Below are positions 4,551-55,368 of a stretch of 64,000 nt of DNA, one piece after another. Numbering within the stretch: position 1 is the stretch's first letter; every line of letters starts with the position of its first letter. The notes beneath the pieces are model-generated. The model did no database searches. It worked only from the letters and a program-made list of their open reading frames with translations, and was not told the DNA's origin. The stretch is from Haliotis rufescens (taxonomy: Eukaryota). The stretch spans positions 26,226,001-26,290,000 of the forward strand of contig NW_025963791.1 in assembly GCF_023055435.1 (NCBI RefSeq), written 5' to 3'. A program made the translations under genes and the position numbers.

Positions 4551-5829
4551 CATACACCGACAAGCACATATGTTGTTTTTTTAAATTTCAGAATTAATTT
4601 CGAAAGATTTTCACTCGCTCGAATATTTGTAATAAAACAATTTTTTTTGTCGTCGTGTGAACTATGTAGAAACTAAGGAGAAACCAAATACGTGTCAGCT
4701 GTTGGCTCATGGTCCATGGAGTGTAAATGGTTCACTGCAAAAGAGAAGTTTATCTCGGACCATGTAAGAGTAGCCAAGTGATTAGGGCGTTTTCTCGTCA
4801 TCCTTTAAACTAGGTACGACTGCACTGTGCATTGTGTTGAGCCTATTCTTCGAATTCTCGCCTGGCCACATTCATATCGCATACACAAAGCTGCCCCCAC
4901 CCCCTCCCAACACACTCACCCTCCCCGCGCTCAAATGCGACTACAGTATGTTCACAGAAATCCTACTATTTGTTTATTGTTGAAAAATCGTCAATTTTTA
5001 TTACTGTATTAGTTTCACCGTCTAAATATTTTGCCGTGAACATGGTTCCTGGGTTATGTTATGCAATTACGTGTATGCTAATTAAACTTTCGTTGTGTTC
5101 ATTGTAATTCCTGCATTCTAATTAGGTGAACTGGTCAAGTGTTACTGTTTTCATTTCCCAATGAATGTAAAGAATTAGGCCACGCCCACCGAAGCGGACT
5201 ACGTTTATCACTACGGAATGTCTGGGAATCCCAATATTACAGCCGAGGGAATTCCATTTCTGCTAACGTGTATCGTCATGCACAGGGCATTTAACGAAAC
5301 TCATGCATATTCATTGTCCAAACTATTCTTTGAGACCGAAGGCCGAGATGGAATACTACAGCAACCGTGGAGGCTCGCTCGCCTGTTTTTTTCCTACTCG
5401 ACTGGGTTTAACAAATTTCATATCTTTCGGGTTTCATTTCTAACCCGCATTTTTCGAAGTGTGTCTTCCCTTACTCAGGGAACTAATGTTTCAATCTGGC
5501 GTTGACTAACCTTGTCATTTCAAACATCCGCCTTCTCCCGGACATATTTGTTCCGGTTCGTTACAGTCTGACTGTTGCAGTTCTTCTCGTGTCTTGCCTT
5601 GATTGACAGATCCTATGAACTTTGTTTTGATCCTACTCTCCGTTGATTGACCACTGACTTTCTTGGTTAAACTATTGTAGATAACACATGTCATCGTTGT
5701 CGAATTGTATTATAATCATGCAAACTTTCGTAAGAATCCGCTACGCGGATTCATACAGTTTGCACATCCGTGTTTCGTTTCATACCTTAATGAACCTAAA
5801 AAAATCCACAGTCAATCCTTAAATATATA

Positions 5830-15396: not shown

Positions 15397-16531
15397 GTAA
15401 GAAAGCTAAGAGTTTTGTATATAGAAGTTTTGGTTCATTTGAATTAACTTTCATAGAGTATAACATTGTCAAAGACACCCCTCTTGTTGTATTTTATGTT
15501 ATAATGATCAGCTTTGGGCGTCTACACGCGTTGAGCAATGACGACTAAAACACATGGCTGTTATTCCGATCGGTCGAATATATAGTTAAGAATGATAAAA
15601 GTTTGGTCTATCGATCAGAAGTGTATAGTCAATCATTTTCAGCGGATCAGCATCTGGATAATAAAAGTCTTAAAACAGAGCATTCCAATATTTTCAAGTA
15701 GGGGTTTAAGACAAAAAACGATAGTGTTTCGATGGCAGCACTGTTTTAAGTAATTAAGCTATTATATATACGTGCTTTGCTAAACTGTTGTAACATATTG
15801 ATGACTATGTGGAAAAGTTGCATGTTGGAAGGTAATTTTAAAACATGTCCCACAATCAATTTATTTAATTATGAAGTAAAACTGAGAAGGGGCTGATTCC
15901 AGTTATGGTTCACAACCTTCTCCACATTGCGTTTCTTAAATAATTGATAAATCTCTTGTTCTTTGGAACCCTGGATGGTGAGTGAATGTGTGCATTTCAT
16001 ACAGGACATGCTTTTGATCCCGAACATAAGCATAATGAAATGTAAACTAAATAGAATTATAAAATTCGCTGCTCTGTAATACCATAACACACTTTGACAC
16101 TTGCAATTGCAAAAAGTATTTTGAGAAATCAAACTCTCTACATTATGACTATTTTATGACAATCTGACCTTTCTAAGGTTAAATATAACGTAACAATCCT
16201 TTAGCTCAAATACATGCCATCGGATCATTGATAAAACAGTGTTTCGTTTGATTACATAATGGTCTACTGGAAAAGTGTCATGTGTCATGTCTTCTATCCA
16301 GAGTGGTACCAAACATCGTTATTAGGAACGTATAAATGATGGCTATTTTGATCTTGTCCTTGTCTGAATTGGTTGTTTTTTTAGATTCCATATTCATGAA
16401 CAGGAAAAGTGTCACGTGTGACGTTCAGATTGGCGACACACACCGTTATTAAGAATCCATAAACGATGGCCATTTTAATCTTTTCCTTGGCTTAATTGGA
16501 TGTTTGTTGTTTTAGATTCCAGACAACAAGG

Positions 16532-19500
16532 ATGAAGTTTCATTTCTACATCACCTTGTGTAGTTTTGTCTTTACAAACACCCAAATGACAAGCTATGAC
16601 TCATCTGACGACGTGTTTGGTTCCTACCTCAACGACCTATTGACCTCTGTGAAAGATGAGTCTTTGAACGGAGTTCTTAATACGACTACAGGCATGTCCA
16701 TTCTCCACTGCAACGTATTCTGCAACGGTACAACAGTCACAAATGTCGTTGACCGCGCGTGCTTTTCCTTCCCAATCTGCAAAACATGTCGCTGTGATGC
16801 TGACTGTAAAGAATATGGCGACTGTTGTCCAGACGAAAGGTTGAATGTGACGATGGAAAGGGAAAACAGGCATGTTTGTGTCAGTGGAACAAATAAAACA
16901 TATTTCTTCACTGGTCCCCATACTGGATACTACATAATAACCACATGTCCGGAAGAGTTCAATCTCCAAATGCCGTCTGTTTCTCAAATATCAGCAGATG
17001 ACCTCACTCCAGTGACATCGATCACAACAAATATCACCTACTTGAATGAAGTGATCGCCGAATGTCATGACGATAACATTACCATCAGATGGGTAAAGGA
17101 AAATGTATGTCATAAGAAGAGAAACTCATCTCATTCAAACGGCAATGAAAGCTCAACAGATTGTTTAGCATCTATTCATCCTCCATCTGATATTCTACCT
17201 AGACCGTGTGACACTGATTTCGCTGATCAACAGTACGTAGACTCGTGCAACAAGACAGGGTTATGGGATGGTTCTTTCTCTGACATAACCGAGGAACAAT
17301 GTAGGCTTGGATTCTATTACCCAGTGGCTGGGGGAACGTACTTGTTCAAGAATATCTTCTGTTATATGTGCAATGGACTGTCAACACCTATTGTAAACTG
17401 CGGAAGATCATACCTCAATTTTATTTCTATCAGCACACTTGTTTGTACAAACTGTGAACGGCGAAAGTGTAAGGCAAAAGAATGGCATGACTGGATCAAG
17501 GTAAGATATATAATTATCACGTACAAGCAACGTAGAGGCAATATCAAGGTTTTGAAATGATCACCATATCTAGGTGCTGATATGACTGGGTCACGATGAG
17601 TAATACAACTAACAACAAAGGTAGTGGTATCACCATATCTAGGTGCTGATATGACTGGGTCACGATGAGTAATACAACTTACAACAAAGGTAGTGGTATC
17701 ACCATATCTAGGTGCTGATATGACTGGGTCACGATGAGAAATGCAACTTACAACAAAGGTAGTGGTATGACCATATCTAGGTGCTGATATGACTGGGTCA
17801 CGATGAGTAATACAACTTACAACAAAGGTAGTATCACATTATCTTGGCGCTGCTGTGACTGGGTCTCGATGAGTGGTGTGGCCATATCTAGGTGCTGGTA
17901 TGATTTGATTATGATTGGTAGTACGACCATATCCAGGAGCTGGTATGACCTTCCAGTAGTTTGTATATCTTCCAGCTATGTTTATGGTATCAATAATGGT
18001 GGTTACAAGATCACGATGAGTGCTGTGGTGGCTGGGCAACAGTGGAAATTTCAAAATTTAAAGTAAAATGGTGGATGATTACCCTTTTTCCTTTCAATCA
18101 TATACAAGTTGTGGACTTCTTGCATGGTCTAAAACATAAGTACGAGCAATATGAGCGAAAAGGGCTAGTGCTTCAAACTTTCAAGAGATCGTAGTATGCC
18201 TAATCTACCTATGGACAAGTCCGTGCACTAAGACTACTTTTTAACATGTGTTTGTACTGTCCTGATGTACAATGACAATTAGCTTGAGTCAAAGATTTGC
18301 GCATTAAAACGGTCTCTCAAATCATCAGCATTTTTTACATATTTTAACTTAACGTATACATACATACTGTGTTGATAAACAAAGCGGTCATTAATAAACT
18401 TTTCTTATTCTGTGAGCCACACGTGCTCCTATCATCGTTGGTTCTTTGCTGAAATTATGCATCACTGCTAACATTCTGCTATGTAACTCTCCAAAGGCTA
18501 CTGGTTTAATATTATTCAAAATATATATTTCGGCTTGAGGCCATAGAATTGATATTATTCCAATTATTCAAAGGACTTTGTGTGGACAGAAGCATTACTC
18601 TCTTAAATATGCGAGTTATGACCCTCGGCTGGTAGTTACATGATAATGTTACAGAAGTCACTGAAGGTAGGAAACAATGATATTCCTTTGTAATCGAGTT
18701 CGTTTTATTATTTTTACTCTTGATTATCAATCATTGTCAGTGGCAAAGTTGGAATTAGAATAATATTATATTATTCACCTTAAGGACTAAAATTCTGTGG
18801 TGGTGTTTCACATACGCAATTTACAGTGTTTTGTTTTTCACACTAACCTATGTCTAATATTTGAAGCCAATGGATTAAATGTTGAAGAAATCGATAATAT
18901 TCTAAACATTGTGTTTTGTCTTGACTTTTCCAGAACGAGTGCCGTGCCATGTTCTGTCGCTCGGGGTACGATCTCAAGGGTGAAAAATGTCAATTAACAG
19001 CTGCCGGATTGTCCAGAGTTGAGTACCAGTTGGCACTCCAGTTTTGGCCAACTGAAAAAACCACATATGACCCAAGACTGCAGGACTGGAAATTCATAGA
19101 GTCATTGGTTGTCTATAACATACCATCAGTTGCAGAGGAGTACAATATGACCTATTATATGTTTTCTGTTGAAAAGCCTGTGTACACTGACATTGCCAAT
19201 AGTTCCAGATTTGTCCATGTGCCATCCTTTGGACTGACATTGACGTTCAGGACAAACCAAACCTGTTGTCGGGATACATATGAAGAAACTATACTGGCGT
19301 TATTGGAGGATAATTGGTCGATGGAGTATAATGGTTCGGAGTTTCAGTTCACGCCGTCTAAGGATGATCTTTATACTTTTTCAAAGAGACAGTTATACAC
19401 GATGCATCCCCCGTACACCAATCCACAGAAAGCCGAGATGTTCGACAGCCTTACGTCGGAGTATGTTGAAACGCCCGAAGATTATGTTTACTATCCTTCT

Positions 19501-20532
19501 GTTTTGCCACATTGTTCGTATGTGTACCTCTCCGTGAATGAATTTAACTGGAACACTGATGCGACTATCACTCTTCAGTATGTGGGTATAACAATTCAGT
19601 TCGATAAATTCATTAAAATGGACGAAGAAAATATAATTTTATGCGTGGACACAATGAAAGAGTTGTATTCAAACTACCAAGATCCAGTCAAACTGGCTGA
19701 ACATATTTTAACTCTAGTCTTCTCCATTTTATCTATGATCTGTTTGGCCTTGACCTTCATCACCTACTGCACATTCCCTTCCCTTCTCACCCTGCCCACG
19801 AAGAATACGATGTGTCTGGTCGGGTTTCTCTTCTTGGCTCAGTTGCTGCTTCTGTTTAAGCAACTGGCCATCCGGGATGAAACTGCTTGCAAAATAATTG
19901 GAATTCTCATACATTACTTGTGGCTCACAGTTATATTGTGGATGAACGTCTGTTCCTATCACATGTTCCATGTCTTCGTCGTCGATGCTGGAAAACCGAT
20001 GGGTACCCAAAGTCGTCTTCTGAAATACTCCCTCTATGCCAATGGATTGTCTCTGATCATTGTTCTCATTACCATATTTTCAAATCTCGGCGTTTCTTCA
20101 GGAAGCCATATCGGCTATGGTGTAACCACGTGCTACCTGAATTCGTCACTTCTTGTCGGTGTTGCTTTCGTGGCTCCTCTAGGTATCGTTCTCCTCTTGA
20201 ACATCATATTCTTCAGCGTCAGTGTGTGGACGATGGCCAAGATCAACAAAATGAGCGCAAGTATTGGGGCTGAGAAGAGTCAGGTGCACATCTACATTAA
20301 ATTATCCACACTGACAGGGATCTTTTGGATCCTGGCAATCCTCGGTGATGTTCTCCAGCAGCAAGTCCTCATCTTCATCTCCATCGTCCTGAACGCCGGT
20401 CAAGGGATTTTCATCTTCATCTCCTATGTTGCCAACAAAAGGGTTCTTCAACTGTGGAGAGGAAAAATTAACAAATACAAACCTACTGCTAACAGTCAAT
20501 CGTCTGATCAGACGATGACTACTCAGTTGTGA
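16532..20532 (+). CDS. SMB-domain Methuselah-like/secretin-class GPCR, tandem copy 3 (exons 16532-17500, 18934-20532; ~855 aa)
   Basis: Same architecture as copy 2. Donor aag|gtaaga at 17501, acceptor ttccag at 18933, phase 0, intact 7TM region. Confidence 0.9.
17558..17950. repeat. 69-bp tandem repeat (4 copies plus degenerate ones) in the intron of GPCR copy 3
   Basis: tcaccatatctaggtgctgatatgactgggtcacgatgag... recurs at 17561, 17630, 17699 and 17768. Confidence 0.9.
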
Positions 20533-27139: not shown

Positions 27140-27768
27140 AAGACTCCCATATCAACCCGAGACTCCCATATCAACCCGAGACTCCCATCTCAACCCGAGA
27201 CTGTCATATCAACCCGAGACTCCCATATCAACCCGAGACTATCACATGATCCCGAGGCTGTCATATCAACCCGAGACTGTCATATCAACCCTAGACTCCC
27301 ATATCAACCCGAGACTCCAATATCAACCCGAGACTCCCATATCAACCCGAGACTATCACATGATCCCGAGACTGCCATATCAACTCGAGAATCCTATATC
27401 AACCCGAGACTATCACATGATCCCGAGACTGTCATATCAACCCGAGACTCCCATATCAACCCTAGACTCCCATATCAACCCGAGACTCCCATATCAACCC
27501 GAGACTCCCATATCAACCCGAGACTATCACATGATGCCGAGACTGCCATATCAACTCGACTCCCATATCAACCTGAGACTGTCATATCAACCCGAGACTC
27601 CCATATCAACCCGAGACTATCACATGATCCCGAGACTGCCATATCAACTCGGGACTCCCATATCAACCCGAGACTGTCATATCAACCCGAGACTCCCATA
27701 TCAACCCTAGACCATATCAACCTGAGACTCCCATATCAATCCGAGACTCCCATATCAACCCGAGACTC
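27140..27768. repeat. 19-bp minisatellite (~33 copies)
   Basis: Unit gagactcccatatcaaccc with a recurring variant gagactatcacatgatccc. Confidence 0.92.
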
Positions 27769-28088: not shown

Positions 28089-28589
28089 ATGGGTCTCGAT
28101 CTGACTTTGTTTGTTGGCACAATAGACCCGAACCTCATCTGCAGCATCTGCAGCCAAGTGTTCGTGAACCCCGTGTCAAACTCCTGTCATCACATCTTCT
28201 GTCAGTCGTGCATCAGGAGGCGCAGCAAGTCCAGGACGTCTCGATACTGTCCGGAATGCTCAACCAAGCTCCACGCAGAGTCCTCAGAGGTATCGGTGGA
28301 GCTAAAACTGAAGCTGTTGAGGTTGAGAATCAAGTGTAACCATGGGTGTGGCATTGTTTGCGAGCTAGCGGATCTTCCCGACCACGTGGCTGATGTGTGT
28401 CCTAACGCTCCTGTTTCTTGTCCTTACAAGAACGTTGGATGTTGTAAGACTGTGAAGAGGTGCGAGGCGAGTATTCATGCTGAGGAGTGCTATCACAGGT
28501 ACGTGTTTGAACCAATTGCATTAAACGTGTCCAGAAAAAAAAAAAAAATATATATATATATCTATATATATATATATATATATATATAG

Positions 28590-28622
<33 letters not shown>

Positions 28623-31600
28623 ATATATATATTTGAACGAAAAATATGTATATATATATATTTAAACGAAATGATATGGTTATAATGTTGTAACAATTTT
28701 CTTCAGGAAGTCACGCAAGTGCATTTTAGTCTGTGAGTGTGTGAGCGAGTGAGTGAGATTGGTTTAACGCTGCTTTGTCTAGAAATTCAGTTCATATACC
28801 GCATGTCAGCTTTTTGTGGGAGGAATAAACAAAGATGCTCAGTATGTACACGTTCACCATTTTGATGAAACCATCAACCACGGGTGTGATCAAGGGTCAT
28901 AAAAAGGGCGAACCTGGGAACACGACCCAACTTTCAAGCGAATCCTGAGAAGGGACATAACTCTGCACAACGAAATATGGAACTTTCTTGGGCCAAATAT
29001 CATGCCTCCTAGTTCTCCCCCAACTACTTAACCCAAAGATATAATGCTGGGTTATTGCTAAAGGCGGCGTAAAGCCATACTGCTCACTCACCCTACTACT
29101 AAACCACCGCCCGCCCATTCCTACCGGGTCTTAACTTCGTTGGTTGGTTGGTTGGTTTGTTGTTTAACGCCGCACTCAGCAATATTCCAGCTATATGACG
29201 GCGGTCTGTAAATAAATGAGTCTGGACCAGACAATCCAGTGATTGACATCATGAGCATCGATCCACGCAATTGGGATCGATGACATGCATCAACCAAGTC
29301 AGCGATCCTGACCACCCGATCCCGTCAGTCGCCTTTTACGACAAGCATAGTCACCTTTTACGGCAAGCATGGGTTGCTGTAAACTTCGAACACATTGCAT
29401 ATTCATTATGGGTTTAAAGAAACATACACACCAATGTGTGACATTAAATTGTTCAGTTCAGTGAATAAATCTCAACCACAGTTACCCTTCCTGCAGATTT
29501 GTGGACTGCGAGGCTTGTGGGTTCCGAATTCAGTACTGTGACCTCTTCACCCACCAAAGCAAGACGCGATGCCTGGAGAAGAAGCTGAGACAACAGGTTG
29601 CGCGGGCAGCGAAATCAACCAACCTGGAGGTCCGGCGTCACCGAGACTACGTTCTACGTCAACATTTTCAACTTGAACGACATCAACGACAAGCGGTCAT
29701 GAGCCATTTCAGATCCAAGCAACAAAGCTACTTGGACAGTGTACGTTCTAAACACAATGACGACACCAGCGATGACATGTTCTCCGACTCCTCTCCACGA
29801 CCAAAGGATTCAGTTGCAGAAAACCAGTCTCTAGTTCTTAGTTTTGGCAAATCTCCTAGGCCGTCACACGCAGGGCAGAATGTCTTCACGTGTAAAAATT
29901 GCAAGAAACCATTCAGAGAAGCGGGCAACCATAGTATGGCATGTACCTACCACGCAGGGGTGAGAGTCTTTACTAAACCTACCTTCATAATTTCTTTTAA
30001 TCCTCTCACCGCTTATGCAATGTGAGTGTAAAAAAATAATTATATCACAACATGAAATTTATTGATGACGCCTTTACCAGTTCCAGTAAAAACGTCCTGT
30101 AATAGGAATAATAACTTGTCATGTTTGTGAATATTTTATGGCTTCATTCTTATTGGTTAACTTAGATCTTGGTATTTCCCAAGTAATACACGATTTACGA
30201 AAGATATTTGACTTTACTCAAGTCACTTGTTTGTTCGTGTTTTATATTAATAAATAGAGAATCTCACCACGTGTCTTTTGATATCCAATATATCAACACG
30301 AGTTGAAAAAAGTGGAAAAGGTTTTTCCACTTTTATCAACGAGTGTTGATATGTTTGATATCCAAAGACACGAGGGTGAGATTTTATTTATCATCCAACA
30401 TCATTCTTCCAACTTTTCAGTTTTAAGTGTAAAGAGTACTGCTAACAGCTTCAGTAGCAGAGCCATTAGTGATGTCATTTGATTGTGACGCCATGAAACA
30501 ATGACGTCACAATGGCCTGCAAAGCATCGTGATGCAATTTCATTGCAGCGATATCTACAATGTAGATATCGCTTGATCTCGCCCAAGCGATATCTCCTGT
30601 GGGAGCCAGTTTTGGATGATAATATAAGTTTACAACTGCTTATATCTCATGCCCATAATTATTGTCATCCCCTAGATATATGCGCGTCAGCATAGGGGTG
30701 ACTATAATTATGAGCATGGGTATATTAGTGTGGTCATGTGAGATACATATCATCTGGATGTGGACCAGGTCATAAATGCATTTATAAAAGTGTGTGATTG
30801 CAAAAGTATTGAGTACTCATTAGTTCATTAACTAAATAAGTAAAAGTGACAGTTACCGTCACTGAGTATCTCTGTTGAATGGTATATATTATTAATTAAG
30901 TGTAACGACTTAAGTCTTAAACCTACCGATTCTGAAACATTCATTTAATTTTCAGGATACATTATGGTTTTACTTACCTATTTTTTCCCAAAGCGTTTGT
31001 TGTTTTATGCTAGACATGTGGAGGACATTTCCAGATTTGACGCATCAGTGACGAAATTGATGTCCGATGCAATTCTTTGTTTTGACTCGTACCCTAAGTT
31101 CCTATGTTTTTTTAGGTGAAACATTAACTTGCCTTTGCATGTGTTTGTCAAACTGACGGGTGCCTCTAGTGGGACAGGATACGCTAAACTGTTCCTGACC
31201 ACCTGGTATCATCACTATCTGATAGTGATTCATAAACACATGCTTTATGATATGCTAGTAGTCGGAAACATCGTACAATGGACTCTGCTTTTAGCATATT
31301 TCATATGAAAATGGAAAGTGTTTTTTGTCGCTTTTATTGTAACCCGTTCCAGTTGTGAAACGTAATCGCTTTAAACTCTCTATTTTTATTACATGTAACG
31401 CCAACAGCCAGTAAGTATACTCTTTCTATTTACATTAATATTTAACATGACTTTATAACACCTCTACGAAATAAACAGAATATTTGCTTTTCCACCGAAG
31501 AATCGTAAAATATTCATTTTTCAAATTCTACCCCAAAAGACTTGGGGGTTAACATTTTGATCACATCAGTCTCTATTCTGTATGTTCATAAAAAAGTTAT

Positions 31601-34600
31601 TTTTCTAACTAATAGCCTTTGTTTTTTCATTTGATCCGCAGATTGTAAGTATATGTGTAAGTGTGCTTCTTGTGTGATACAATGTGCACCCATGTGGAAG
31701 GAGATATTCGAGGGGACATACATTTTGTTTAGCTTGTGGAACTGGCTACATGAATAACCTCTTATATCTGTGTTCATTGTGGTAAACTGAGTGGTGGGTT
31801 AGCCTAATGATTATTACGATTGCATTTCAAAACGGATATGTATGTTGCCTTCCGCGCCATGAAATACTAGTATATATTCATCGTTTATGTTTTCATCTCA
31901 CGAGCTCGCTATGTGACACTGCATGTTTTGTGTGAAATTTAGAGATTGCGACTATGGTCTCCAGGAAAACCTGCCCTTTGGACAATAGTCCCCACCACAC
32001 ACCCCCTCTCCCCACCCATATATATATGTTGAGTTGTAGATGTAGATCTGAATTAAATACTCCTCCCCCCCCCCCCCCCCCCCCCCCCCACCCCCACCCC
32101 TACCTCAAGTATTACAGGGGCACGGGTGGCCCAGTCGTCTAAGGCGCCGAGATTCGCTATGCAGAGTTGCCTCCCTTGGGCACGCCAGAAACCTATGATT
32201 GTGGGTTCGAATCCCGGTTCGCCCCGATTATGTTTCTAGGTTTGTCAGCACCATACCCGTGCTCGTGGGTTTCACCGAAGTGGTTAACATCTGAGACCTG
32301 CATCACTTCGGGCTTCCTCCCACATTAAACTGACACGCCTTGATATAACTGGAATACTGTTAAAAGCGGCGTTAAACCCTACCCACTCACTCACACAAGT
32401 ATTACAGCAAGAATCACCATACGACCACAAATATATCCCAAATTATGATCCAAAGGGACTTATTTCACACAATTTACTCCTCCTATAACATGTTTCGTAT
32501 AAGACATAAACATTACATTACATGACGTAAATATATCTCTGTGGTCCTCGAACACCTCCTTTGAAACACGTACACCAGCTTCCTTCCTACTCGGTTATGC
32601 TCACTACTGCATATATCATCTACTGTACAGCCACTGACATGTATGTATGGCATCTGGCTTGCATGAAACGGATCTTAATATATAGGTAATGTCGACATCT
32701 ATATATTTGAGAATGTATTTTATTTAATGTCCGTGTGTGCATCGGGGTAGCCTAGTGGTTAAAACATTCGCTTGTCACTCCGAGCATCCAGGTTCGATTC
32801 TCCACTTGGGTACAAAAACACGCCTGTTTCGCGTCGGGGTGTAGCTAATCATTAAAGCTGCATACAATCTAATCAGTTATGTTTGTAAATTATTATTAAT
32901 GTCACACATGCCTTAGTCAAACCATTCTACAGTTCTGAAAATAAAGATATGTAAGTAGCGTTACCTCTGATATATGTTTCGCAGTGCCACTAATGGTTTT
33001 CCTGGTCAGTGTCTGTTTTATCATGTCTCAACAGAATCTTTTGAAACCTGGCGTATTTTAACATTATTTTTCATGTTTTGTATATAATTAGTATCACCAT
33101 CAAATGCGACCCCATAAGGTAATACTAATTGTGAACTATTGGTACCAATGTTTTCTAACATTCCGAGATATACGATGGAAATCGTTGAATGGTGTATATT
33201 TATGATATTCTTCTACCTACTTGGAAAGATAGATACAATAGACTATTTCACCTTAAACAATTAATTACATATGTTTAAGATGGATAAATTTAAATCTGTC
33301 ACTCCATTTATCGAAACTACATGTACATGCCTGCTCGTTTCCATGGTGATGTTGAGATGTACTTTCCTAACAGCATGAAGTGTACACAATCATGGTTGCC
33401 GTTGTCATGGTGATTATGTCTATAAACCACACTACTGCACATGTGTAAGTGCTCGTTTCCCTATGACAGACACTATTGCACAGATGAGAGTTACTTCATG
33501 TTATTGTAATGGTGAATGTCACATTCGTTCTGTAGTGGTGAATGTCACGTGTATGTAATTTATAAGGTATGCTGTGTTATAAGAAAAGAGCTTCCATTTC
33601 AGTTTTCATTTCAGTTAAAAACAACTGATTAATTGTAACATGATATTATTATCAAGTGTTAATGTGCTTAATAACACATGAAATCATCTTTAAATAATTA
33701 AATTAATTTTTTTTCGCTGATCATTCCTTTTCTGTTCACACATTACTATTTAATTGTACATGCACACAACTATTTACTAAATACGATCAACTTTATAAGA
33801 ATATATTTTTATTTAGTGAGTATATGTTATATTATATTTAATCTGTATATTAACGCCACATAAATATGTGTAACTAAACATATAGAATCATATTTAGACT
33901 AACAAATATTTGTTCTTCCTTTTTTTCATATGGATGGGACAGATCGACGTAAGTGTATACATTTCGAGAATTAATAAAATGGTTAACTACAAAGTTACAA
34001 GAGTTATAACATGTATAAAACCTTGATAAGAGATAACATGTACACAATCTCATTGTTAACGATCTTAATCTTGTGCACAATGAAGGTTGAAAGTTTGCAC
34101 AATTTTGACATGCACATGAGGTTGTATTATAGTTGACGCGTTCATGTACTTCTCTACTATCACACCAATTGACCGACTCCGTGGTCTAGTGGATAGAGCG
34201 TCTGCCCGGAGAGCGGAAGATCGGGTTTTCGATCCCCGACCGCGTTATACCAGTAGACGTTAAAGGATGGTACTTGTTGTTACCTTGCCTGGCGCTCAGC
34301 GTTAAAAGGATAAAACAAGGACTGGTCTGCTCGGAGCATACCGAGTGGGGTATTTATGTTAAACTGCGGCATTAGTCTGGACAAGCAGCCACACACACAC
34401 ACGTCGCTATATGAGTGCAATTTCACCTCACCTAATCAGCCTAATCAAATTAGAATAAGATGTATTTTTGTTTCTTTTTCATATTGATCGATCTTGATAG
34501 CTTTTTGTAAGTATAATTTCTTCTCTTCTTGGATGTGTGTGTAACTTGAGGTAACTTTTGGACATTTCCATTTAGGACAAGTTTAATTTTCGCCATTTCT

Positions 34601-35714
34601 TTCAACCAACGAACATTATTGCATTCAGGCGTCCAATTAATGTGTGTTTTTCGTGAAACGTTTAATTTGTATTTTTGGGTCATATTATTCATTTCTGGGG
34701 GAATATGGTCGGTTCCTTCACTTCGTGACATGTTTCATGGCAAATAATAATTGGTACTTGTTTGTATTTCATGCTCTACCTACAACTGTGTTCGACAGGG
34801 TGTAAGTATTGATTGATTATTATAATAATAAAAGTAAATTGTATTACGTACATTTATAGCTTTTTACGAGTCCTTGATAAGATAACAGTTCCCATATTTG
34901 TATCATTTCTATTAACGGACATTCATCGATACAGATAATACAGAACTTACAGCTTTATTGTTTCCAAATGGCAAAAGGAATGATGGCATGTCTTCATTTA
35001 TTTTCATGATCTCGACCACCTGCGGACAAATAGGGGGTAAGTAATATGTTTTGCTATCATAATCTTAACTTGTATTGTGATTCATTCTTTAACTTTTGGC
35101 GAATTTAAATTATGTGGTATGGATAGTTCGTTACTCTGGANNNNNNNNNNNNNNNNNNNNNNNNNNNNNNNNNNNNNNNNNNNNNNNNNNNNNNNNNNNN
35201 NNNNNNNNNNNNNNNNNNNNNNNNNNNNNNNNNNNNNNNNNNNNNNNNNNNNNNNNNNNNNNNNNNNNNNNNNNNNNNNNNNNNNNNNNNNNNNNNNNNN
35301 NNNNNNNNNNNNNNNNNNNNNNNNNNNNNNNNNNNNNNNNNNNNNNNNNNNNNNTTAACGCTTGAAACTGTATTCCAGTTATATCACGACGTGACCGCTT
35401 GATGTGAGAGGAAGACCCGAAGTGATGCATGTCTCAGACGTTTACTACTTTGGTGAAACCTAGAGCACGGGTATGGTGCTGACAAACCTAGAAACATTAT
35501 CGAGGCGAACTTGCATTCGAACCTACAATCATAGATTCCTGGCGTGCCGAAGGAACGCAACTCTGTATAGCGAATTGTGGTGTCTTAGGCGCCTGGGCCA
35601 CCCGTGCCTTAAGTATGCGCATTACACACACATGAATTGCCATTGCAGACATGCTACAACTGTGGAAGGATGGACTACCAACACGGGTGTAAGACTGGAA
35701 AACACGTGTCGTGA
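28089..35714 (+). CDS. RING-HC + TRAF-type zinc-finger protein (RNF151/NRDP1-like E3 ligase), ~320 aa. Exons 28089-28498, 29497-29959, six micro-exons, 35649-35714
   Basis: MGLDLTLFVGTIDPNLICSIC...CHHIFCQSC...CPEC RING, then CNHGC...H...C and CPYKNVGC...H...C TRAF-like fingers. Phase-2 intron 28499-29496. Exon 2 ends CKNC...CTYHAG|gtgaga (phase 0). The terminal exon after tgcag reads TCYNCGRMDYQHGCKTGKHVS*. AATAAA at 36226. Confidence 0.82.
28548..28660. repeat. (TA)n/(GA)n microsatellite
   Basis: Read directly from the sequence. Confidence 0.85.
29140..29379 (-). mobile_element. SINE family D (V-SINE-like core)
   Basis: Reverse complement of gcttgtcgtaa..ggcgact core and tail tatagctggaatattgctgagtgcggcgttaaac(aacc)n. 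Confidence 0.82.
30257..30622. mobile_element. Non-autonomous palindromic dispersed element, copy 2
   Basis: Same orientation as, and similar in sequence to, 25932-26291. Confidence 0.7.
31408..31410 (+). CDS. Micro-exon 1 of the RING gene (CCA, Pro)
   Basis: ccaacag|CCA|gtaagt. Confidence 0.7.
31642..31644 (+). CDS. Micro-exon 2 of the RING gene (ATT, Ile)
   Basis: ctaac..ttttttcatttgatccgcag|ATT|gtaagt. Confidence 0.75.
32117..32395 (+). mobile_element. SINE family A
   Basis: Family A sequence; TSD caagtattaca. Confidence 0.88.
33943..33948 (+). CDS. Micro-exon 3 of the RING gene (ATCGAC, Ile-Asp)
   Basis: actaac..ttcttcctttttttcatatggatgggacag|ATCGAC|gtaagt. Confidence 0.75.
34171..34432 (+). 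mobile_element. SINE family C (internally deleted)
   Basis: tRNA head gtggtctagtgg...ttcgatccc; ggactggtc core; ttcacctcacct tail. Confidence 0.8.
34501..34506 (+). CDS. Micro-exon 4 of the RING gene (CTTTTT, Leu-Phe)
   Basis: tttctttttcatattgatcgatcttgatag|CTTTTT|gtaagt. Confidence 0.72.
34799..34801 (+). CDS. Micro-exon 5 of the RING gene (GGT, Gly)
   Basis: tttcatg...ttcgacag|GGT|gtaagt. Confidence 0.72.
35034..35036 (+). CDS. Micro-exon 6 of the RING gene (GGG, Gly)
   Basis: ttttcatg...caaatag|GGG|gtaagt. Confidence 0.7.
35356..35608 (-). mobile_element. SINE family A (diverged; its 3' end runs into the N gap)
   Basis: Reverse complement of family A. Confidence 0.8.
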
Positions 35715-36384: not shown

Positions 36385-36905
36385 AGATACATCCACCGGA
36401 AACTGGAGACGGAAATAGATGTCCCCTTCGTTGAATACTTTGATACTTCCACTGGGACTAGAGACGGAAATAGATGTCCCCTCCGTTGAATACTTTGACA
36501 CATCCACTGGGACTAGAGACGGAAATAGATGTCCCCTCCGTTGAATACTTTGATGCATCCACTGGGACAAGAGACGGAAATAGATGTCCCCTCCGTTGAA
36601 TGGTCAGATACATTCACTGGGACAAGATACGGAAATAGGTGTCCCCTTCGTTGAATTGTTTGATACATTCACTGGGACAAGAGACGGAAATAGATGTCCC
36701 CTTCGTTGAATGGTTTGATACATTCACTGGGACTAGATACGGAAATAGATGTCCCCTCCGTTGAATACTTTGATGCATCCACTGGGACTAGAGACGGAAA
36801 TAGATGTCCCCTTCGTTGAATGGTTTGATGCATCCACTGAGACCAGAGACGGAAATAGATGTCCCCTTCGTTGAATGGTCAGATACATCCATCGGGAGCG
36901 AGAGA
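36385..36905. repeat. 55-bp minisatellite (~9 copies)
   Basis: gagacggaaatagatgtcccc.. at 36406, 36461, 36516 and onward. Confidence 0.92.
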
Positions 36906-48459: not shown

Positions 48460-49508
48460 CTCTAGAGTCATTTGAGCCAAGGCTCAGGTGACTCCCCTTA
48501 GGCCGAAACGACTCCCCCGTCGAAGGCTCAGATAACTCACCAGGCTCCTCAAATGACTCCTCCATTTGTTTTGAACGTTACAAATGTTTTGACACTAATT
48601 GTGCAACAGTCTGTTGTGGATACCGTTGATCCTAATATCAAAGAATTGGATATAGAACAGGGGGTGTAGTTTGAGCCTCATATGAAAGAATCGGATATAG
48701 AACAGGGGGAGTAGTTTGAGCCTGATAGCAAAGAATTGGATATAGACCAGGGGGAGTAGTTTGAGTCTGATACTAAAGAATTGGATATAGAACAAGGGGA
48801 GTAGTTTGAGCCTGATATCAAAGAATTGGATATAGAACAGGGGGAGTAGTTTGAGCCTGATAGCAAAGAATTGGATATAGACCAGGGGGAGTAGTTTGAG
48901 TCTGATACTCAAGAATTGGATATAGAACAAGGGGAGTAGTTTGAGCCTGATATCAAAGAATTGGATATAGAATAGGGGGAGTAGTTTGAGCCTGATAGCA
49001 AAGAATTGGATATAGAACAGGGGGAGTAGTTTGAGTCTGATACTCAAGAATTGGATATAGAATAGGGGGAGTAGTTTGAGCCTGATACTCAAGAGTTGGA
49101 AATAGAACAAGGGGAGTAGTTTGAGCCTGATACTCAAGAAATGGATACAGGACACAGGGAGTATTCTAAAAATAAACAATAGATTAAGAAACGTATAGTG
49201 TTTTAGGAGAGGCACCTGTAGTTTTTTCCAAATAAAGTTAAATATAAAACTGTAATAAAATAACTGATACTTAAACATCTGACACACAATATTGGGGATT
49301 GTTCTTAACCTGACATTTCCGAATAGAAAATGAGGAAGAGGGTTTAAAACCTTTATTATACAAGATATATTTGATCTTTTCTGTCATCATTTTAATTCAA
49401 AACAAGGGGGGTCATTTGGGCCCAGTAGGGGAGTTAGATGGGCCTAGAGGGAGTGTTTTGAGCCAGGCTAGGGGAGTCACGTGAGCCTAGGTCCATATGA
49501 CTCTAGAG
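48460..49508. mobile_element. Inverted-repeat element containing a 45-bp minisatellite (48630-49160, ~11 copies)
   Basis: ctctagagtcatttgagccaaggctcaggtgactcccc is inverted relative to ggggagtcacgtgagcctaggtccatatgactctagag. Internal unit aagaattggatatagaacagggggagtagtttgagcctgatagca. Confidence 0.78.
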
Positions 49509-49584: not shown

Positions 49585-51015
49585 ATGCAGGAAATATACA
49601 ACACATGTGACAAGGTGCAGATAATACACAACACATGTGACAAGGTGCAGGAAATATACAACACATATGACAATATGCAGGTAATATACAAAACATGTGA
49701 CAAGTTGCAGATAATATACAACACAATGTGACAAGTTGCAGATAATACACAACGCATGTGACAAGGTGCAGATAATACACAACACATGTGACAAGGTGGA
49801 AGAAATACACACACATGTGACAAGGTGCAGATAATACTCAACACAATGTGACAAGGTGCAGATGATATAAACACAATGTGACAAGTCGCAGAATATACAC
49901 AACACATCTGAAAATATGCAGATAATACACAACACAATGTGACAAGGTGCAGATAATACACAACACAATGTGACAAGTTGCAGATAATACACAACACAAT
50001 GTGACAAGGTGCAGATAATACACAACACATGTGACAATATGCAGATAATACACAACACAATGTGACAAGGTGCAGATAATACACAACACAATGTGACAAG
50101 TTGCAGATAATACACAACACAATGTGACAAGGTGCAGATAATACACAACACAATGTGACAAGTTACAGATAATACACAACACAATGTGACAAGTTGCAGA
50201 TAATACACAACACAATGTGACAAGGTGCAGATAATACACAACACAATGTGACAAGTTGCAGATAATACACAACACAATGTGACAAGTCGCAGAATATACA
50301 CAACACATCTGAAAATATGCAGATAATACACAACACAATGTGACAAGGTGCAGATAATACACAACACAATGTGACAAGTTGCAGATAATACACAACACAA
50401 TGTGACAAGGTGCAGATAATACACAACACAATGTGACAAGTTGCAGATAATACACAACACAATGGGACAAGTTGCATATAATACACAATACATGTTACAA
50501 GGTGCAGATAATACACAACACAATGTGACAAGGTGCAGATAATACACAACACAATGTGACAAGGTGCAGATAATACACAAAACAATGTGACAAGTTTCAG
50601 ATAATACACAACACAATGTGACAAGTTGCAGATAATACACAACACAATGTGACAAGTTGCAGATAATATACAACACAATGTGACAAGTTGCAGATAATAC
50701 ACAACACATGTTACAAAGTGGAGGAAATATACACACACGTGACAAGGTGCAGATAATACACAACACAATATGACAAGGTGCAGATAATACACAACACAAT
50801 GTGACAAGGTGCAGATAATACACAACACAATGTGACAAGGTGCAGATAATATACAACACATGTTACAAGTTGCAGATAATACACAACACAATGTGACAAG
50901 GTGCAGATAATACACAACACAATGTGACAAGGTGCAGATAATACACAACACATGTGACAAGTTGTAGATAATACACAACACATGTGACATGGTGCAGGAA
51001 ATATACACACATGTG
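49585..51015. repeat. 30/31-bp satellite (~46 copies)
   Basis: Unit gtgacaaggtgcagataatacacaacacaat. Confidence 0.95.
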
Positions 51016-51234
51016 TCTGGTCAGACAAATTACCGAATATTATGTTGTTATTTTCAATAACATAACATTTACATCACTTTATGCAGGTTGTTTTTGCCAT
51101 TAGTATATGCCTGTAGTATTTCACGGCTATTACACGGCTGGAATAATGCATAGGTATAGGATCGTTGAAAGGTACGATGCATCCACCGGGAACTGGCGAT
51201 GGAAATAGATATCACATTCTTGAGATGGACAGGA

Positions 51235-54200
51235 TGAGGAGAGAGGTAGAGGGTGACAGAGGAGAGTGGTAGGGGTGACAGAGGAGAAAGGTAGAGGGTG
51301 TCAGAGGAGAAAGGTAGAGGGTGACAGAGGAGAATGGTAGAGGGTGACAGAGGAGAGAGGTAGGTGGTGACAGAGGAGAGAGGTAGAGGGTGACAGAGGA
51401 GAATGGTAGGTAGTGACAGAGGAGAGTGGTTGGGGGTGACAGAGGAGAGTGGTAGTTGGTGACAGATGAGAGAGGTAGGTAGTGACAGAGGAGAGAGGTT
51501 GCTGGTGACAGAGGAGAGTGGTTGGTGGTGACAGAGGAGAGATGTAGGGGGTGACAGAGGAGAGGGGTAGAGGGTGACAGAGGAGAGAGGTAGGTAGTGA
51601 CAGAGGAGAGAGGTAGAGGGTGACAGAGGAGAGAGGTTGGGGGTGACAGAGGAGAGTGGTAGTTGGTGACAGAGGAGAGGGGTAGGTGGTGACAGAGGGG
51701 AGTGGTAGGTGGTGACAGAGAAGAATGGTAGGTAGTGACAGAGGTGAGAGGTAGAGGGTGACAGAGGAGAGAGGTAGGTAGTGACAGAGGAGAGAGGTTG
51801 CTGGTGAAAGAGGAGAGTGGTTGGTGGTGACAGAGGAGAGATGTAGGGGGTGACAGAGGAGAGGGGTAGGTGGTGACAGAGGGGAGTGGTAGGTGGTGAC
51901 AGAGGAGAGAGGTAGAGGGTGACAGAGGAGAATGGTAGGTAGTGACAGAGGAGAGTGGTTGGGGGTGACAGAGGAGAGTGGTAGTTGGTGACAGATGAGA
52001 GAGGTAGGGGTGACAGAGGGGAGTGGTAGGTGGTGACAGAGGAGAGTGGTAGGGGTGACAGAGGGGAGTGGTTGGTGGTGACAGAGGGGAGTGGTAGGGG
52101 TGACAGAGGAGAGTGGTTGGTGGTGACAGAGGGGAGTGGTAGGGGTGACAGAGGAGAGTGGTAGGGGTGACAGAGGAGAGGGGTAGGTGGTGACAGAGGG
52201 GAGTGGTAGGTGGTGACAGAGGAGAATGGTAGGTAGTGACAGAGGTGAGAGGTAGAGGGTGACAGAGGAGAGAGGTAGGTAGTGACAGAGGAGAGAGGTT
52301 GCTGGTGAAAGAGGAGAGTGGTTGGTGGTGACAGAGGAGAGATGTAGGGGGTGACAGAGGAGAGGGGTAGGTGGTGACAGAGGGGAGTGGTAGGTGGTGA
52401 CAGAGGAGAGAGGTAGAGGGTGACAGAGGAGAATGGTAGGTAGTGACAGAGGAGAGTGGTTGGGGGTGACAGAGGAGAGTGGTAGTTGGTGACAGATGAG
52501 AGAGGTAGGTAGTGACAGAGGAGAGAGGTTGCTGGTGACAGAGGAGAGTGGTTGGTGGTGACAGAGGAGAGATGTAGGGGGTGACAGAGGAGAGGGGTAG
52601 GTGGTGACAGAGGGGAGTGGTAGGTGGTGACAGAGGAGAATGGTAGGTAGTGACAGAGGTGAGAGGTAGAGGGTGACAGAGGAGAGAGGTAGGTAGTGAC
52701 AGAGGAGAGAGGTTGCTGGTGAAAGAGGAGAGTGGTTGGTGGTGACAGAGGAGAGATGTAGGGGGTGACAGAGGAGAGGGGTAGGTGGTGACAGAGGGGA
52801 GTGGTAGGTGGTGACAGAGGAGAGAGGAAGAGGGTGACAGAGGAGAGTGGAAGGGGTGACAGAGGAGAGTGGTAGTTGGTGACAGATGAGAGTGGTTGGT
52901 GGTGACAGAGGAGAGAGGTAGAGGGTGACAGAGGAAAATGGTAGGTGGTGACAGAGGAGAGAAGTAGAGGGTGACAGACGAGAGAGGTAGAGATTGGTAG
53001 GTGTGGACAGAGGACAGTGGTAGGTGGTGGCAGGAGGTTGGTAGATGTGACAGAGGAGAGTGGTAGATGTTGTGGAGGAGAGTTGTAGGTGGTGACAGAG
53101 GAGAGTGGTAGGTGGTGACAGAGGAGAGAGGTATAGGGTGACAGAGGAGAGAATAAGAGGGTGACAGAGGAGAGAGGTTGGTGGTGACAGAGGAGAGTGG
53201 TAGGGGTGACAGATGAGAGTGGTTTGTGGTGACAGAGGAGAGTGGTAGGGGTGACAGAGGGGAGTGGTTGGTGGTGACAGAGGGGAGTGGTAGGGGTGAC
53301 AGAGGAGAGTGGTTGGTGGTGACAGAGGGGAGTGGTAGGGGTGACAGAGGAGAGTGGTAGGGGTGACAGATGAGAGTGGTTTGTGGTGACAGAGGAGAGT
53401 GGTAGGGGTGACAGAGGGGAGTGGTAGGTGGTGACAGAGGAGAGTGGTAGGGGTGACAGAGGGGAGTGGTTGGTGGTGACAGAGGGGAGTGGTAGGGGTG
53501 ACAGAGGAGAGTGGTTGGTGGTGACAGAGGGGAGTGGTAGGGGTGACAGAGGAGAGTGGTAGGGGTGACAGATGAGAGCGGTTTGTGGTGACAGAGGAGA
53601 GTGGTAGGGGTGACAGAGGGGAGTGGTAGGTGGTGACAGAGGGGAGTGGTAGGGGTGACAGAGGAGAGTGGTTTGTGGTGACAGAGGAGAGTGGTAGGGG
53701 TGACAGAGGAGAGTGGTAGGGGTGACAGAGGGGAGTGGTAGGTGGTGACAGAGGAGAGTGGTAGGTGGTGACAGATGTGAGTGGTAGGGGTGACAGAGGA
53801 GAGTGGTAGGTGGTGACAAAGGAGAGAGGTAGAGGGTGACAGAGGATAGTGGAAGGTGGTGACAGAGGAGAGTGGTAGGGATGACAGAGGAGAGTGGTAG
53901 GTGGTGACAGAGGAGAGTGGTAGGTAGTGACAGAGGATAGTGGTAGGTGGTGACAAAGGAGAGTGGTAGGGGTGACAGAGGAGAATGGAAGGTGGTGACA
54001 GTGGAGAGTGGTAGGGATGACAGAGGAGAGTGGTAGGTGGTGACAGAGGAGAGTGGTAGGTGGTGACAGAGGATAGTGGTAGGTGGTGACAGAGGATAGT
54101 GGTAGGTGGTGACAAAGGAGAGAGGTAGAGGGTGACAGAGGAGAGAGGTAGAGGGTGACAGAGGAGAGAGGTAGAGGGTGACAGAGGAGAATGGAAGGTG

Positions 54201-55368
54201 GTGACAGAGGAGAGTGGTAGGTGGTAGAGAGAGGTAGAGGGTGACAGAGGAGAATGGAAGGTGGTGACAGAGGAGAGAGGTAGAGGGTGACAGAGGAGAG
54301 AGGTAGAGGGTGACAGAGGAGAATGGAAGGTGGTGACAGAGGAGAGTGGTAGGTGGTGACAGAGGAGAGAGGTAGAGGGTGACAGAGGAGAATGGAAGGT
54401 GGTGATAGAGGAGATAGGTAGAGGGTGACAGAGGAGAGAGGTAGAGGGTGACAGAGGAGAGTGGTTGGTGGTGAGAGAGGAGAGTGGTAGATGGTGACAG
54501 AGGAGAGTGGAAGGTGGTGACAGAGGAGAGTGGAAGGTGGTGATAGAGGAGAGAGGTAGAGGGTGACAGAGGAGAGAGGTAGAGGGTGACAGAAGAGAGA
54601 GGTAGAGGGTGACAGAGGAGAATGGAAGTTGTTGATGGAGGAGAGTGGTAGGTGGTGACGGAGGAGAGAGGTAGAAGGTGACAGAGGAGAATGGAAGGTG
54701 GTGATAGAGGAGAGTAGTAGGTGGTGATAGAAGAGAGAGGTAGAGGGTGACAGATGAGAATGGAAGGTGGTGATAGAGGAGAGTGGTAGGTGGTGACAGA
54801 GGAGAGAGGTAGAGGGTGACAGAGGAGAGAGGTAGAGGGTGACAGAGGAGAATGGAAGGTGGTGATAGAGGAGAGTGGTAGGTGGTGACAGAGGAGAGAG
54901 GTAGAGGGTGACAGAGGAGAGAGGTAGAGGGTGACAGAGGAGAATGGAAAGTGGTGATAGAGGAGAATGGAAGGTGGTGACAGAGGAGAGAGGAAGGTAG
55001 TGACAGAGGAGAGTGGAAGGTGGTGACAGAGGAGAGTGGAAGGTGGTGACAGAGGAGATTGGAAGGTGGTGACAGAGGAGAGTGGTAGCTGGTGACAGAG
55101 GAGAGTGGTTTGTTGTGACAGAGGAGAGTGGAAGGTGGTGACAGAGGAGAGTGGAAGGTGGTGACAGAGGGGAGGATTAGGTGGTGACAGAGGAGAGTGG
55201 AAGGTGTCGACAGAGGGGAGGAGTAGGTGGTGACAGAGGAGAGTGGTAGTTGGTGACAGAGGAGAGTGGAAGGGGTGACAGAGGAGAGTGGTAGGTGGTG
55301 ACAGGAGGTTGGTAGATGTGACAGAGGAGAGTGGTAGATGTTGTGGAGGAGAGTTGTAGGTAGTGAGA
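51235..55368. repeat. Purine/G-rich 22-24-bp satellite, ~4.1 kb
   Basis: Unit ggtgacagaggagagtggtaggt and variants. Confidence 0.95.

Follow-up and report, generated by a model that had tools for sequence, protein, structure and literature searches.

A gene whose 3′ end appears to be divided almost codon by codon lies on the forward strand of a 64,000-nucleotide (nt) stretch of the Haliotis rufescens genome (NCBI RefSeq assembly GCF_023055435.1, contig NW_025963791.1, positions 26,226,001 to 26,290,000; hereafter the window, numbered from its first letter), the composition of which is that of eukaryotic DNA with about 40% G+C. The coding part of exon 1 (28089–28498) runs from the ATG to a phase 2 end before GTACGT and encodes a RING finger and the first TRAF-type zinc finger. 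Exon 2 (29497–29959) encodes the second TRAF zinc finger, a coiled-coil linker and the first half of a C-terminal zinc module (C-x2-C ... C-x-Y-H-x-G), and its 3′ end at 29959 is in phase 0, reading ..ACTYHAG before GTGAGA. The terminal coding exon (35649–35714), TCYNCGRMDYQHGCKTGKHVS-stop, supplies the second half of the module (T-C-x2-C-G-x2-D-x3-G-C-x2-G-x-H-V-S-stop, with the TGA at 35712–35714). We conclude that the last 29 codons of the gene are very probably split into six micro-exons of 3, 3, 6, 6, 3 and 3 nt and this 66-nt terminal exon, the micro-exons encoding a connector, PIIDLFGG, between the two halves of the module.

A TRAF-like RING ligase and its six probable micro-exons

The two ordinary exons are 100% identical in translation to RefSeq H. 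rufescens ‘E3 ubiquitin-protein ligase PDZRN3-like’ isoforms X1 and X2, exon 1 corresponding to residues 1–136 and exon 2 to residues 138–291 of isoform X2 (P0126). Exon 1 has Pfam matches to RING and TRAF zinc-finger families (zf-RING_UBOX, E = 3.7e-9; zf-TRAF, E = 2.7e-8; above cut-off), and the family profile matches the RING–zinc-finger structures of TRAF5 and TRAF6 (E = 1e-21 to 1e-17). Pfam found no MATH/TRAF-C domain, the small Cys/His module forming the C-terminus instead, and no PDZ domain in the window’s exons or in full-length homologues; the RefSeq name PDZRN3 reflects N-terminal similarity only. The gene is best described as a putative TRAF-like RING E3 ligase, with an N-terminal RING followed by TRAF-type zinc fingers, an identity that a preliminary description of the window had proposed and that the domain matches bear out. 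The full abalone protein would be 320 residues long, and 24 of the 963 coding nt of the gene fall in micro-exons. A paralogue search found exon 2 to be single-copy in the genome. The terminal exon likewise has one copy in the 1.33-Gb genome, in the expected order and orientation, and holds every family-invariant residue, correctly spaced (C, C, G, D, G, C, G, H), with the stop at the family’s position.

All six proposed micro-exons (ME1 to ME6) are on the plus strand between exon 2 and the terminal exon. ME1 (31408–31410; CCA after cag) encodes the invariant proline of the spacer, ME2 (31642–31644; ATT after cag) isoleucine, ME3 (33943–33948; ATCGAC after cag) Ile-Asp, ME4 (34501–34506; CTTTTT after tag) Leu-Phe, of which F is invariant, and ME5 (34799–34801; GGT after cag) and ME6 (35034–35036; GGG after tag) one invariant glycine each. 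Joined in order they give P-I-ID-LF-G-G. Each is followed by a GTAAGT donor, which reads GTAAGTAT at ME1, ME2, ME4 and ME5, GTAAGTGT at ME3 and GTAAGTAA at ME6, and each is preceded by a pyrimidine tract and a YAG acceptor, the last 27–45 nt being free of competing AGs. The intervening sub-introns measure 231–2298 nt, and none of the micro-exons is part of any repeat family. On re-reading, the coordinates first assigned to the end of exon 2, the terminal exon and the six micro-exons proved exact, as did the pyrimidine tracts reported at all six acceptors and the CTAAC upstream of two of them (at −37 for ME2 and −44 for ME3). A second GTAAGT lies 12 nt past the ME2 donor (31657–31662); its use would add four in-frame codons (V-S-I-C), and no such use was seen.

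An invariant eight-residue spacer in homologues

Searching a representative library of 1.84 billion proteins with exon 2 returned 37 homologues, and word-index searches and cluster look-ups enlarged the set to 158 proteins, 139 of which reach the C-x-[WY]-H-x-G motif. The complete module is present in 44 of these, drawn from four phyla (molluscs, a brachiopod, amphioxus and corals), and in each of the 44 precisely eight residues stand before [TMVK]-C-x2-C-G. Their spacers, without exception, follow the pattern P-[IVMF]-[VIML]-x-[VL]-F-G-G, in which P, F, G and G are invariant; they include PIVKVFGG (oyster), PMIEVFGG, PMVQVFGG, PIVPLFGG, PIVNLFGG, PIMDVFGG, PMLELFGG (Lingula), PVVELFGG (three Branchiostoma species) and PVVDVFGG or PFVDVFGG (corals). 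In oyster the complete mRNA, encoding PIVKVFGG, is represented by 51 contigs in a cluster of 205 members. One candidate, P0010, was set aside, its 16 matched stretches being C2H2 fingers of an unrelated protein.

The other models that reach the motif stop or stray at the spacer: 63 of the 139 end in intron directly after H.G, 11 read P and then intron, 3 read P-I and then intron, 2 skip the spacer and 16 have other tails, several of which read the terminal exon in the wrong frame. Two expectations of the preliminary description are thereby borne out, namely that orthologues would carry an eight-residue PIIDLFGG-like spacer (as all 44 full-length homologues do) and that gene predictors would miss the chain, 14 models stopping after one or two micro-exons in addition to the 63 that stop after H.G and the 2 that skip the spacer.

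The C-terminal module comprises six cysteines and two histidines in two halves joined by this fixed eight-residue connector. It has no Pfam match, and CHORD (PF04968) and BTK gave none at E up to 10 in four homologues. By eye it resembles both, sharing C-x2-C ... N-x4-C-x-[WY]-H-x-G ... G-C-x2-G-x-H with six Cys and two His, although CHORD and BTK have a W-[ST]-C-C core where the abalone family has T-C-x2-C. The nearest Atlas clusters carry the families CHORD (0.89) and BTK (0.87), both below the 0.9 threshold for a lead, and two AlphaFold runs gave a pLDDT (predicted local distance difference test) below about 60 in the module, too uncertain for a fold search. A different abalone gene (L002, 916–1749; genome G000, contig C1, at about 22.439 Mb) ends in a Cys/His module of related type, C-x2-C .. 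C-x-Y-H .. W-T-C-C .. G-C-x2-G-x-H; there a single exon without interruption encodes the module, the connector is 21 residues long and Pfam again has no match.

Chance expectation of the chain

Plus-strand GTAAGT occurs nine times in the 5.7-kb stretch between exon 2 and the terminal exon, against about 1.1 expected (Poisson P = 3e-6), and eight more times in the window’s other 58 kb (17 in total). The count of eight first given for the stretch was one too low; the six said to have an AG 3 or 6 nt upstream do have it. An AG at −3 or −6 thus precedes six of the nine, whereas in the rest of the window the proportion is 6 of 25 (P = 0.008).

We enumerated every chain that can be built from AG-3k-GT sites in the intron, ignoring donor strength. 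The 38 sites yield 54,099 eight-residue chains, and only four of them fit the homologues’ spacer pattern. All four contain ME2, ME4, ME5 and ME6, and the ME1–ME6 chain is the only pattern-fitting one in which each donor is a consensus GTAAGT. When the pattern was relaxed and GC donors were admitted as well, 45 of 490,167 chains matched; ME5 and ME6 were indispensable to every one of the 45, and ME4 to all except two. PIIDLFGG fits every constrained spacer position, for which we estimate a chance of about 2e-8 with random codons. Protein-level support is weakest for ME3, because spacer positions 3–4 are the least constrained; among the candidates for these positions, ME3 is the only one with a consensus donor, a pyrimidine tract and TTTCAT.

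Genome-wide, the strict site pattern occurs 117 times, against 314 in a reversed control; it is not enriched, which makes the chain a peculiarity of this gene. An 18-mer identical to the ME2 site, found on contig C24 of genome G000, adjoins a satellite and was rejected as a paralogue. The surrounding region (L003; C24, 2474900–2484800) contains a satellite of 26/32-nt units, each with CCAGATGTAAGTAYAC, plus an 86-nt satellite; these arrays provide dozens of acceptor–donor look-alikes that are repeats, not exons.

Splice signals and a shared TTCAT element

Five of the six abalone donors have no exon-side complementarity to U1. All six nevertheless carry GTAAGT, and under established base-pairing rules the GTAAGTAT donor found at four of them extends pairing to the 5′ end of U1. 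Intron-side complementarity may in this way make up for exon bases fixed by coding, as would be expected of such compensation, and a tendency for very short exons to be flanked by stronger splice sites is already known (PMC1431713).

TTTCAT lies upstream of five of the six micro-exons, at −17 to −32 (P = 5e-8): at 31625–31630 for ME2, 33924–33929 for ME3, 34477–34482 for ME4, 34767–34772 for ME5 and 35002–35007 for ME6. In three species together, TTCAT precedes 11 of 13 micro-exons versus none of three ordinary acceptors in the same genes (P = 5e-10). The element matches yUnAy, the loose consensus for branch sites. At several micro-exons only 13–16 nt separate it from the exon, a short distance for a branch point, and a site for a bound factor is therefore an equally open reading. 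UGC, judged by eye, stands near the acceptor in only some of the 13 micro-exon sites.

The chain in abalone annotation and in other genomes

The first two micro-exons can be read directly from the abalone isoforms. The tail of RefSeq X1 (P0064), YHAG-P-VSILFLFTLIFNMTL, is the exact translation of 31408–31458, that is, of ME1 and the intron from 31411. That of X2 (P0126), YHAG-P-I-VSICVSVLLV, is ME1 followed by the exact translation of 31642–31677, that is, of ME2 and the intron from 31645. These tails match letter for letter, and the first two 3-nt exons are therefore already present in public annotation, in truncated models.

Truncated models and partly spliced transcripts of other animals break at the same places, in many species between G and P. 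A tail of P and then intron occurs in H. rubra, H. cracherodii, Magallana, Saccostrea, Pecten, Solemya, Mercenaria and the nemertean Tubulanus, and one of P-I and then intron also in H. rubra (P0001) and oyster (Magallana, P0089). An intron after F is found in the sea urchin Strongylocentrotus (P0024; QIVNLF, then VSIM..) and in the contig L005 described below, an intron between the two glycines in Crassostrea gigas (P0029; PIVKVFG, then VSIL..) and again in L005, and introns after the fifth spacer residue (between V and F) and after F in Acropora, whose RefSeq isoforms X2 and X3 differ by the single P. Altogether, intron positions from truncated models of at least 10 species agree with the chain.

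The family alignment, when used to scan metagenome contigs, picked out genomic contigs from other animals. The most informative, L005, is a gap-free, bivalve-like contig of 6987 nt (nearest named relative Ruditapes, 64%) in which ..CRWHIG is followed by GTGAGT at 2392 and the terminal exon lies at 5409. Its intron has 41 candidate sites, from which a single pattern-fitting chain can be built; the exons, of 3, 3, 12, 3 and 3 nt, encode PMIQVFGG: P (3066–68; CCG, then GTAAGTAC), M (3451–53; ATG, then GTAAGCAT), IQVF (3951–62; 12 nt, then GTGAGTAT), G (4457–59; GGG, then GTAGGTAA) and G (5206–08; GGT, then GTAAGTAT), the last being the equivalent of ME6 and lying 200 nt before the terminal exon. 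No other spacer exon was found in the last intron of this contig. The sole difference from abalone is one extra abalone intron, between D and L. Examination of orthologous introns for micro-splice sites, which the preliminary description had suggested, has thus turned up the same kind of chain in a second species.

Another bivalve-like contig, L007, contains the P and M micro-exons before it ends. In two coral-like contigs (L012 and L013), intron-like sequence is followed by the spacer, which runs without a break into the terminal exon, and in L006, L010 and L011, from the same coral-like sample series, the gene is fully spliced and cDNA-like. L012 and L013 may represent either a fused coral exon or pre-mRNA in which only the first intron is kept, the downstream introns having been removed first. 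Taken across these genomes and models, the micro-exon chain is conserved in orthologous genes. It would seem inherited rather than recent, because a bivalve-like genome has it and because nemertean, sea urchin and Acropora models have introns at the same codon boundaries.

The last intron contains an assembly gap (N, 35141–35354) between ME6 and the terminal exon. Because the gap falls within an intron, it raises no question about the reading frame, and no coding sequence is lost to it, since the homologues’ spacer always has eight residues and the six micro-exons supply eight; the length of the last intron is uncertain owing to the gap. On its far side the gap adjoins a SINE (short interspersed nuclear element)-like element at 35359–35608, an inverted copy of one at 32119–32368 in the ME2–ME3 intron. 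The pair is 81–89% complementary over about 250 nt, brackets ME3–ME6 and could pair in the pre-mRNA. The first sub-intron holds a near-perfect palindrome at 30267–30375 (53-nt arms 3 nt apart), a hairpin resembling a miniature inverted-repeat transposable element.

How the chain may be spliced, and alternatives

Each micro-exon has signals of its own, namely an acceptor with a set-back pyrimidine tract, TTTCAT (in five of the six) and a donor with maximal intron-side complementarity to U1. The seven introns would be removed in succession, each ligation enlarging the exon that presents the next site, because an exon of 3–6 nt presumably cannot hold both splice-site complexes at once. Such stepwise removal would resemble a form of recursive splicing in which every step retains one or two codons, and stepwise removal or steric exclusion has been proposed for other tiny exons (PMC10250204, PMC4674806).

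Several points weigh against this account. Among the proteins found there is no abalone transcript joining exon 2 through ME3–ME6 to the terminal exon, the homologue searches returned neither a full-length nor a partial abalone transcript protein, and a single Logan abalone fragment is unspliced at intron 1. Use of ME3–ME6 in abalone mRNA is accordingly a prediction from genomic signals and homologous proteins. That RefSeq placed ME1 and ME2 from RNA alignments is our assumption about its pipeline. The case for ME3 is made by splice-signal quality alone, and under the loosened pattern weak sites could fill spacer positions 2–4. Indications of splicing order conflict: abalone, oyster and urchin intermediates have lost upstream introns and kept a downstream one, whereas L012 and L013 have the opposite arrangement or a fused exon, and open reading frames cannot decide the order because each shows only the first retained intron.

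Among the alternatives, the preliminary description itself raised a combinatorial device, in which skipping of micro-exons in many combinations would give up to 64 in-frame loop variants. The lengths of all six are indeed multiples of 3, and there are coral transcripts with PFGG for PFVDVFGG (P0061) and without the residue after GG (P0060), besides the single P that separates the two Acropora isoforms. All 44 full-length sequences from four phyla nevertheless keep eight residues, with the invariant P, F, G and G next to zinc ligands, so that the module should be broken in most products of skipping. The molluscan sequences included no skipped form, skipping being confined to a few coral transcripts, and these rare contigs may themselves be splicing errors. 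We therefore regard combinatorial use of the chain as improbable and the figure of 64 variants as unsupported.

The gene might instead end early, X1 and X2 being real proteins and ME3–ME6 with the terminal exon unused relics. Every abalone database model is truncated in this region (X1 and X2 of both H. rufescens and H. rubra, H. cracherodii, H. asinina), as would be expected on such a view, and no full-length abalone transcript protein was found. Oyster, however, has the same truncations and yet abundant full-length mRNA, which makes annotation artefacts or splicing intermediates the better explanation of the short models. Relics would also decay, whereas ME3–ME6 keep consensus donors, in-frame acceptors and the right codons, and the terminal exon has lost none of the invariant Cys, His, Gly and Asp residues and stops where the rest of the family does. 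An early end is thus very unlikely.

An AG near a GTAAGT behind a pyrimidine tract also has the look of a recursive splice site, and the six sites could be ratchet points whose bases are finally skipped, so that exon 2 is joined directly to the terminal exon, as it is in two gene models (Sinanodonta P0002 and Nucella P0071) that take H.G straight to TC..CG. Those two models are genome predictions, however, and all transcript-derived full-length homologues have the eight residues. The sites themselves have 3 or 6 nt between AG and GT, with no zero-nucleotide exon, and these spell the conserved peptide; the sub-introns, at 231–2298 nt, are not a long-intron setting. We give this possibility very little credence. 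Least credible is an ordinary 24-nt exon hidden in the assembly gap, with the six sites coincidental: the gap sequence is unread and coral-like L012 and L013 do have the spacer contiguous with the terminal exon, but ME1 and ME2 are already spliced in RefSeq X1 and X2, six strong sites are very unlikely to spell the family peptide in order by chance, gap-free L005 relies on micro-exons and its last intron holds nothing more, and no contiguous exon encoding the spacer is present in the read part of the window.

Other features of the window

Just upstream of the gene, a 19-nt tandem repeat in 33 copies occupies 27141–27768, where two frames are open as repetitive peptide. An unrelated gene farther upstream (16496–20529) has long open frames of 354 and 535 codons and is Cys-rich, with many N-glycosylation-like motifs. 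Downstream, satellites at 49586–55366 comprise a 31-nt unit in 47 copies and a G-rich 23-nt unit in 181 copies (GC skew up to 0.84), and further tandem arrays have units of 45 nt (48626–49163) and 55 nt (36386–36891). No tRNA was found in the stretch that holds the micro-exons.

Relation to known micro-exon systems

Micro-exons of bilaterians (3–27 nt; neural, SRRM4/eMIC) are frame-preserving, have very strong 5′ splice sites and have to be recognized stepwise, the exon being too small for both splice-site complexes together (PMC10250204); aligners and annotators often miss them (PMC7821500). They are isolated cassettes, mostly alternative, with UGC near the acceptor, whereas the abalone chain has six in series that would encode invariant zinc-module residues, look constitutive and share TTCAT, with UGC near only some of the acceptors. 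Schistosome micro-exon genes (MEGs) are arrays of 10–20 very short symmetric exons with long introns between them, and are also hard to annotate (PMC10526429). Their exons are mostly of 15 bp (the same paper gives a minimum of 6 in its text and 3 in its abstract), and their products are secreted, variable, disordered, lineage-specific and diversified by skipping. The abalone chain, in contrast, has exons of 3–6 nt that encode an invariant peptide in a layout common to several phyla, and it belongs to an intracellular-type RING/TRAF zinc-finger ligase found from corals to amphioxus.

The 3′ end of human RPS24 has three consecutive micro-exons, of 3, 18 and 22 bp (PMC11162997); there are three of these rather than six, and they are alternative, alter the C-terminal tail only and lie outside any conserved domain. 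In recursive splicing, at the zero-nucleotide exons of Drosophila and the recursive splice (RS) exons of vertebrates, an acceptor is followed almost immediately by a consensus GTAAGT donor and the intron is removed stepwise (PMC6110457, PMC4674806). No base from such a ratchet point remains in the mRNA, and the introns concerned are very long, whereas the abalone steps would leave one or two codons and involve introns of 0.2–2.3 kb. Plant micro-exons (1–15 nt), which include a 1-nt exon in Arabidopsis APC11, are used constitutively, have been conserved from the origin of a large clade onwards, are misannotated throughout and have neighbouring introns that splice slowly (PMC8831610, PMC4674806). 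At most two conserved plant clusters are described there as adjacent in one gene, with no series of six reported. Exons 4–8 of fast skeletal troponin T form a series of mini-exons in multiples of 3, about 12–18 nt each, used combinatorially as alternatives in a variable acidic tail.

In the full-text literature on micro-exon arrays, series and clusters we found no case of six one- or two-codon exons inside a conserved domain. Single 3-nt exons are already known, as are runs of small exons in secreted proteins that evolve fast; six in series that encode invariant domain residues go beyond the literature we found.

Significance

The abalone chain is kept across molluscs and apparently across phyla. 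For the study of splicing it offers a compact natural substrate, of about 5.7 kb in abalone and 3 kb in the bivalve contig, suited to asking how exons smaller than the spliceosome footprint are defined, in what order the introns are removed and what partner binds TTCAT. Our wider proposal is tentative: the chain may be an ancient constitutive array, at least as old as the gastropod–bivalve split and probably pre-bilaterian, in which seven phase 0 introns within 24 coding bases are kept by a T-rich TTCAT cis-element. It may use a recognition route other than that of SRRM4 and UGC, and slow stepwise splicing could gate production of the complete ligase. For intron evolution, the puzzle is why seven introns crowded into 24 bases should have been retained. 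For annotation, it means that most public models of the family (among them RefSeq models from abalone, oyster, scallop, sea urchin and corals) are without the real C-terminal zinc module, which a chain search guided by the protein pattern recovers.

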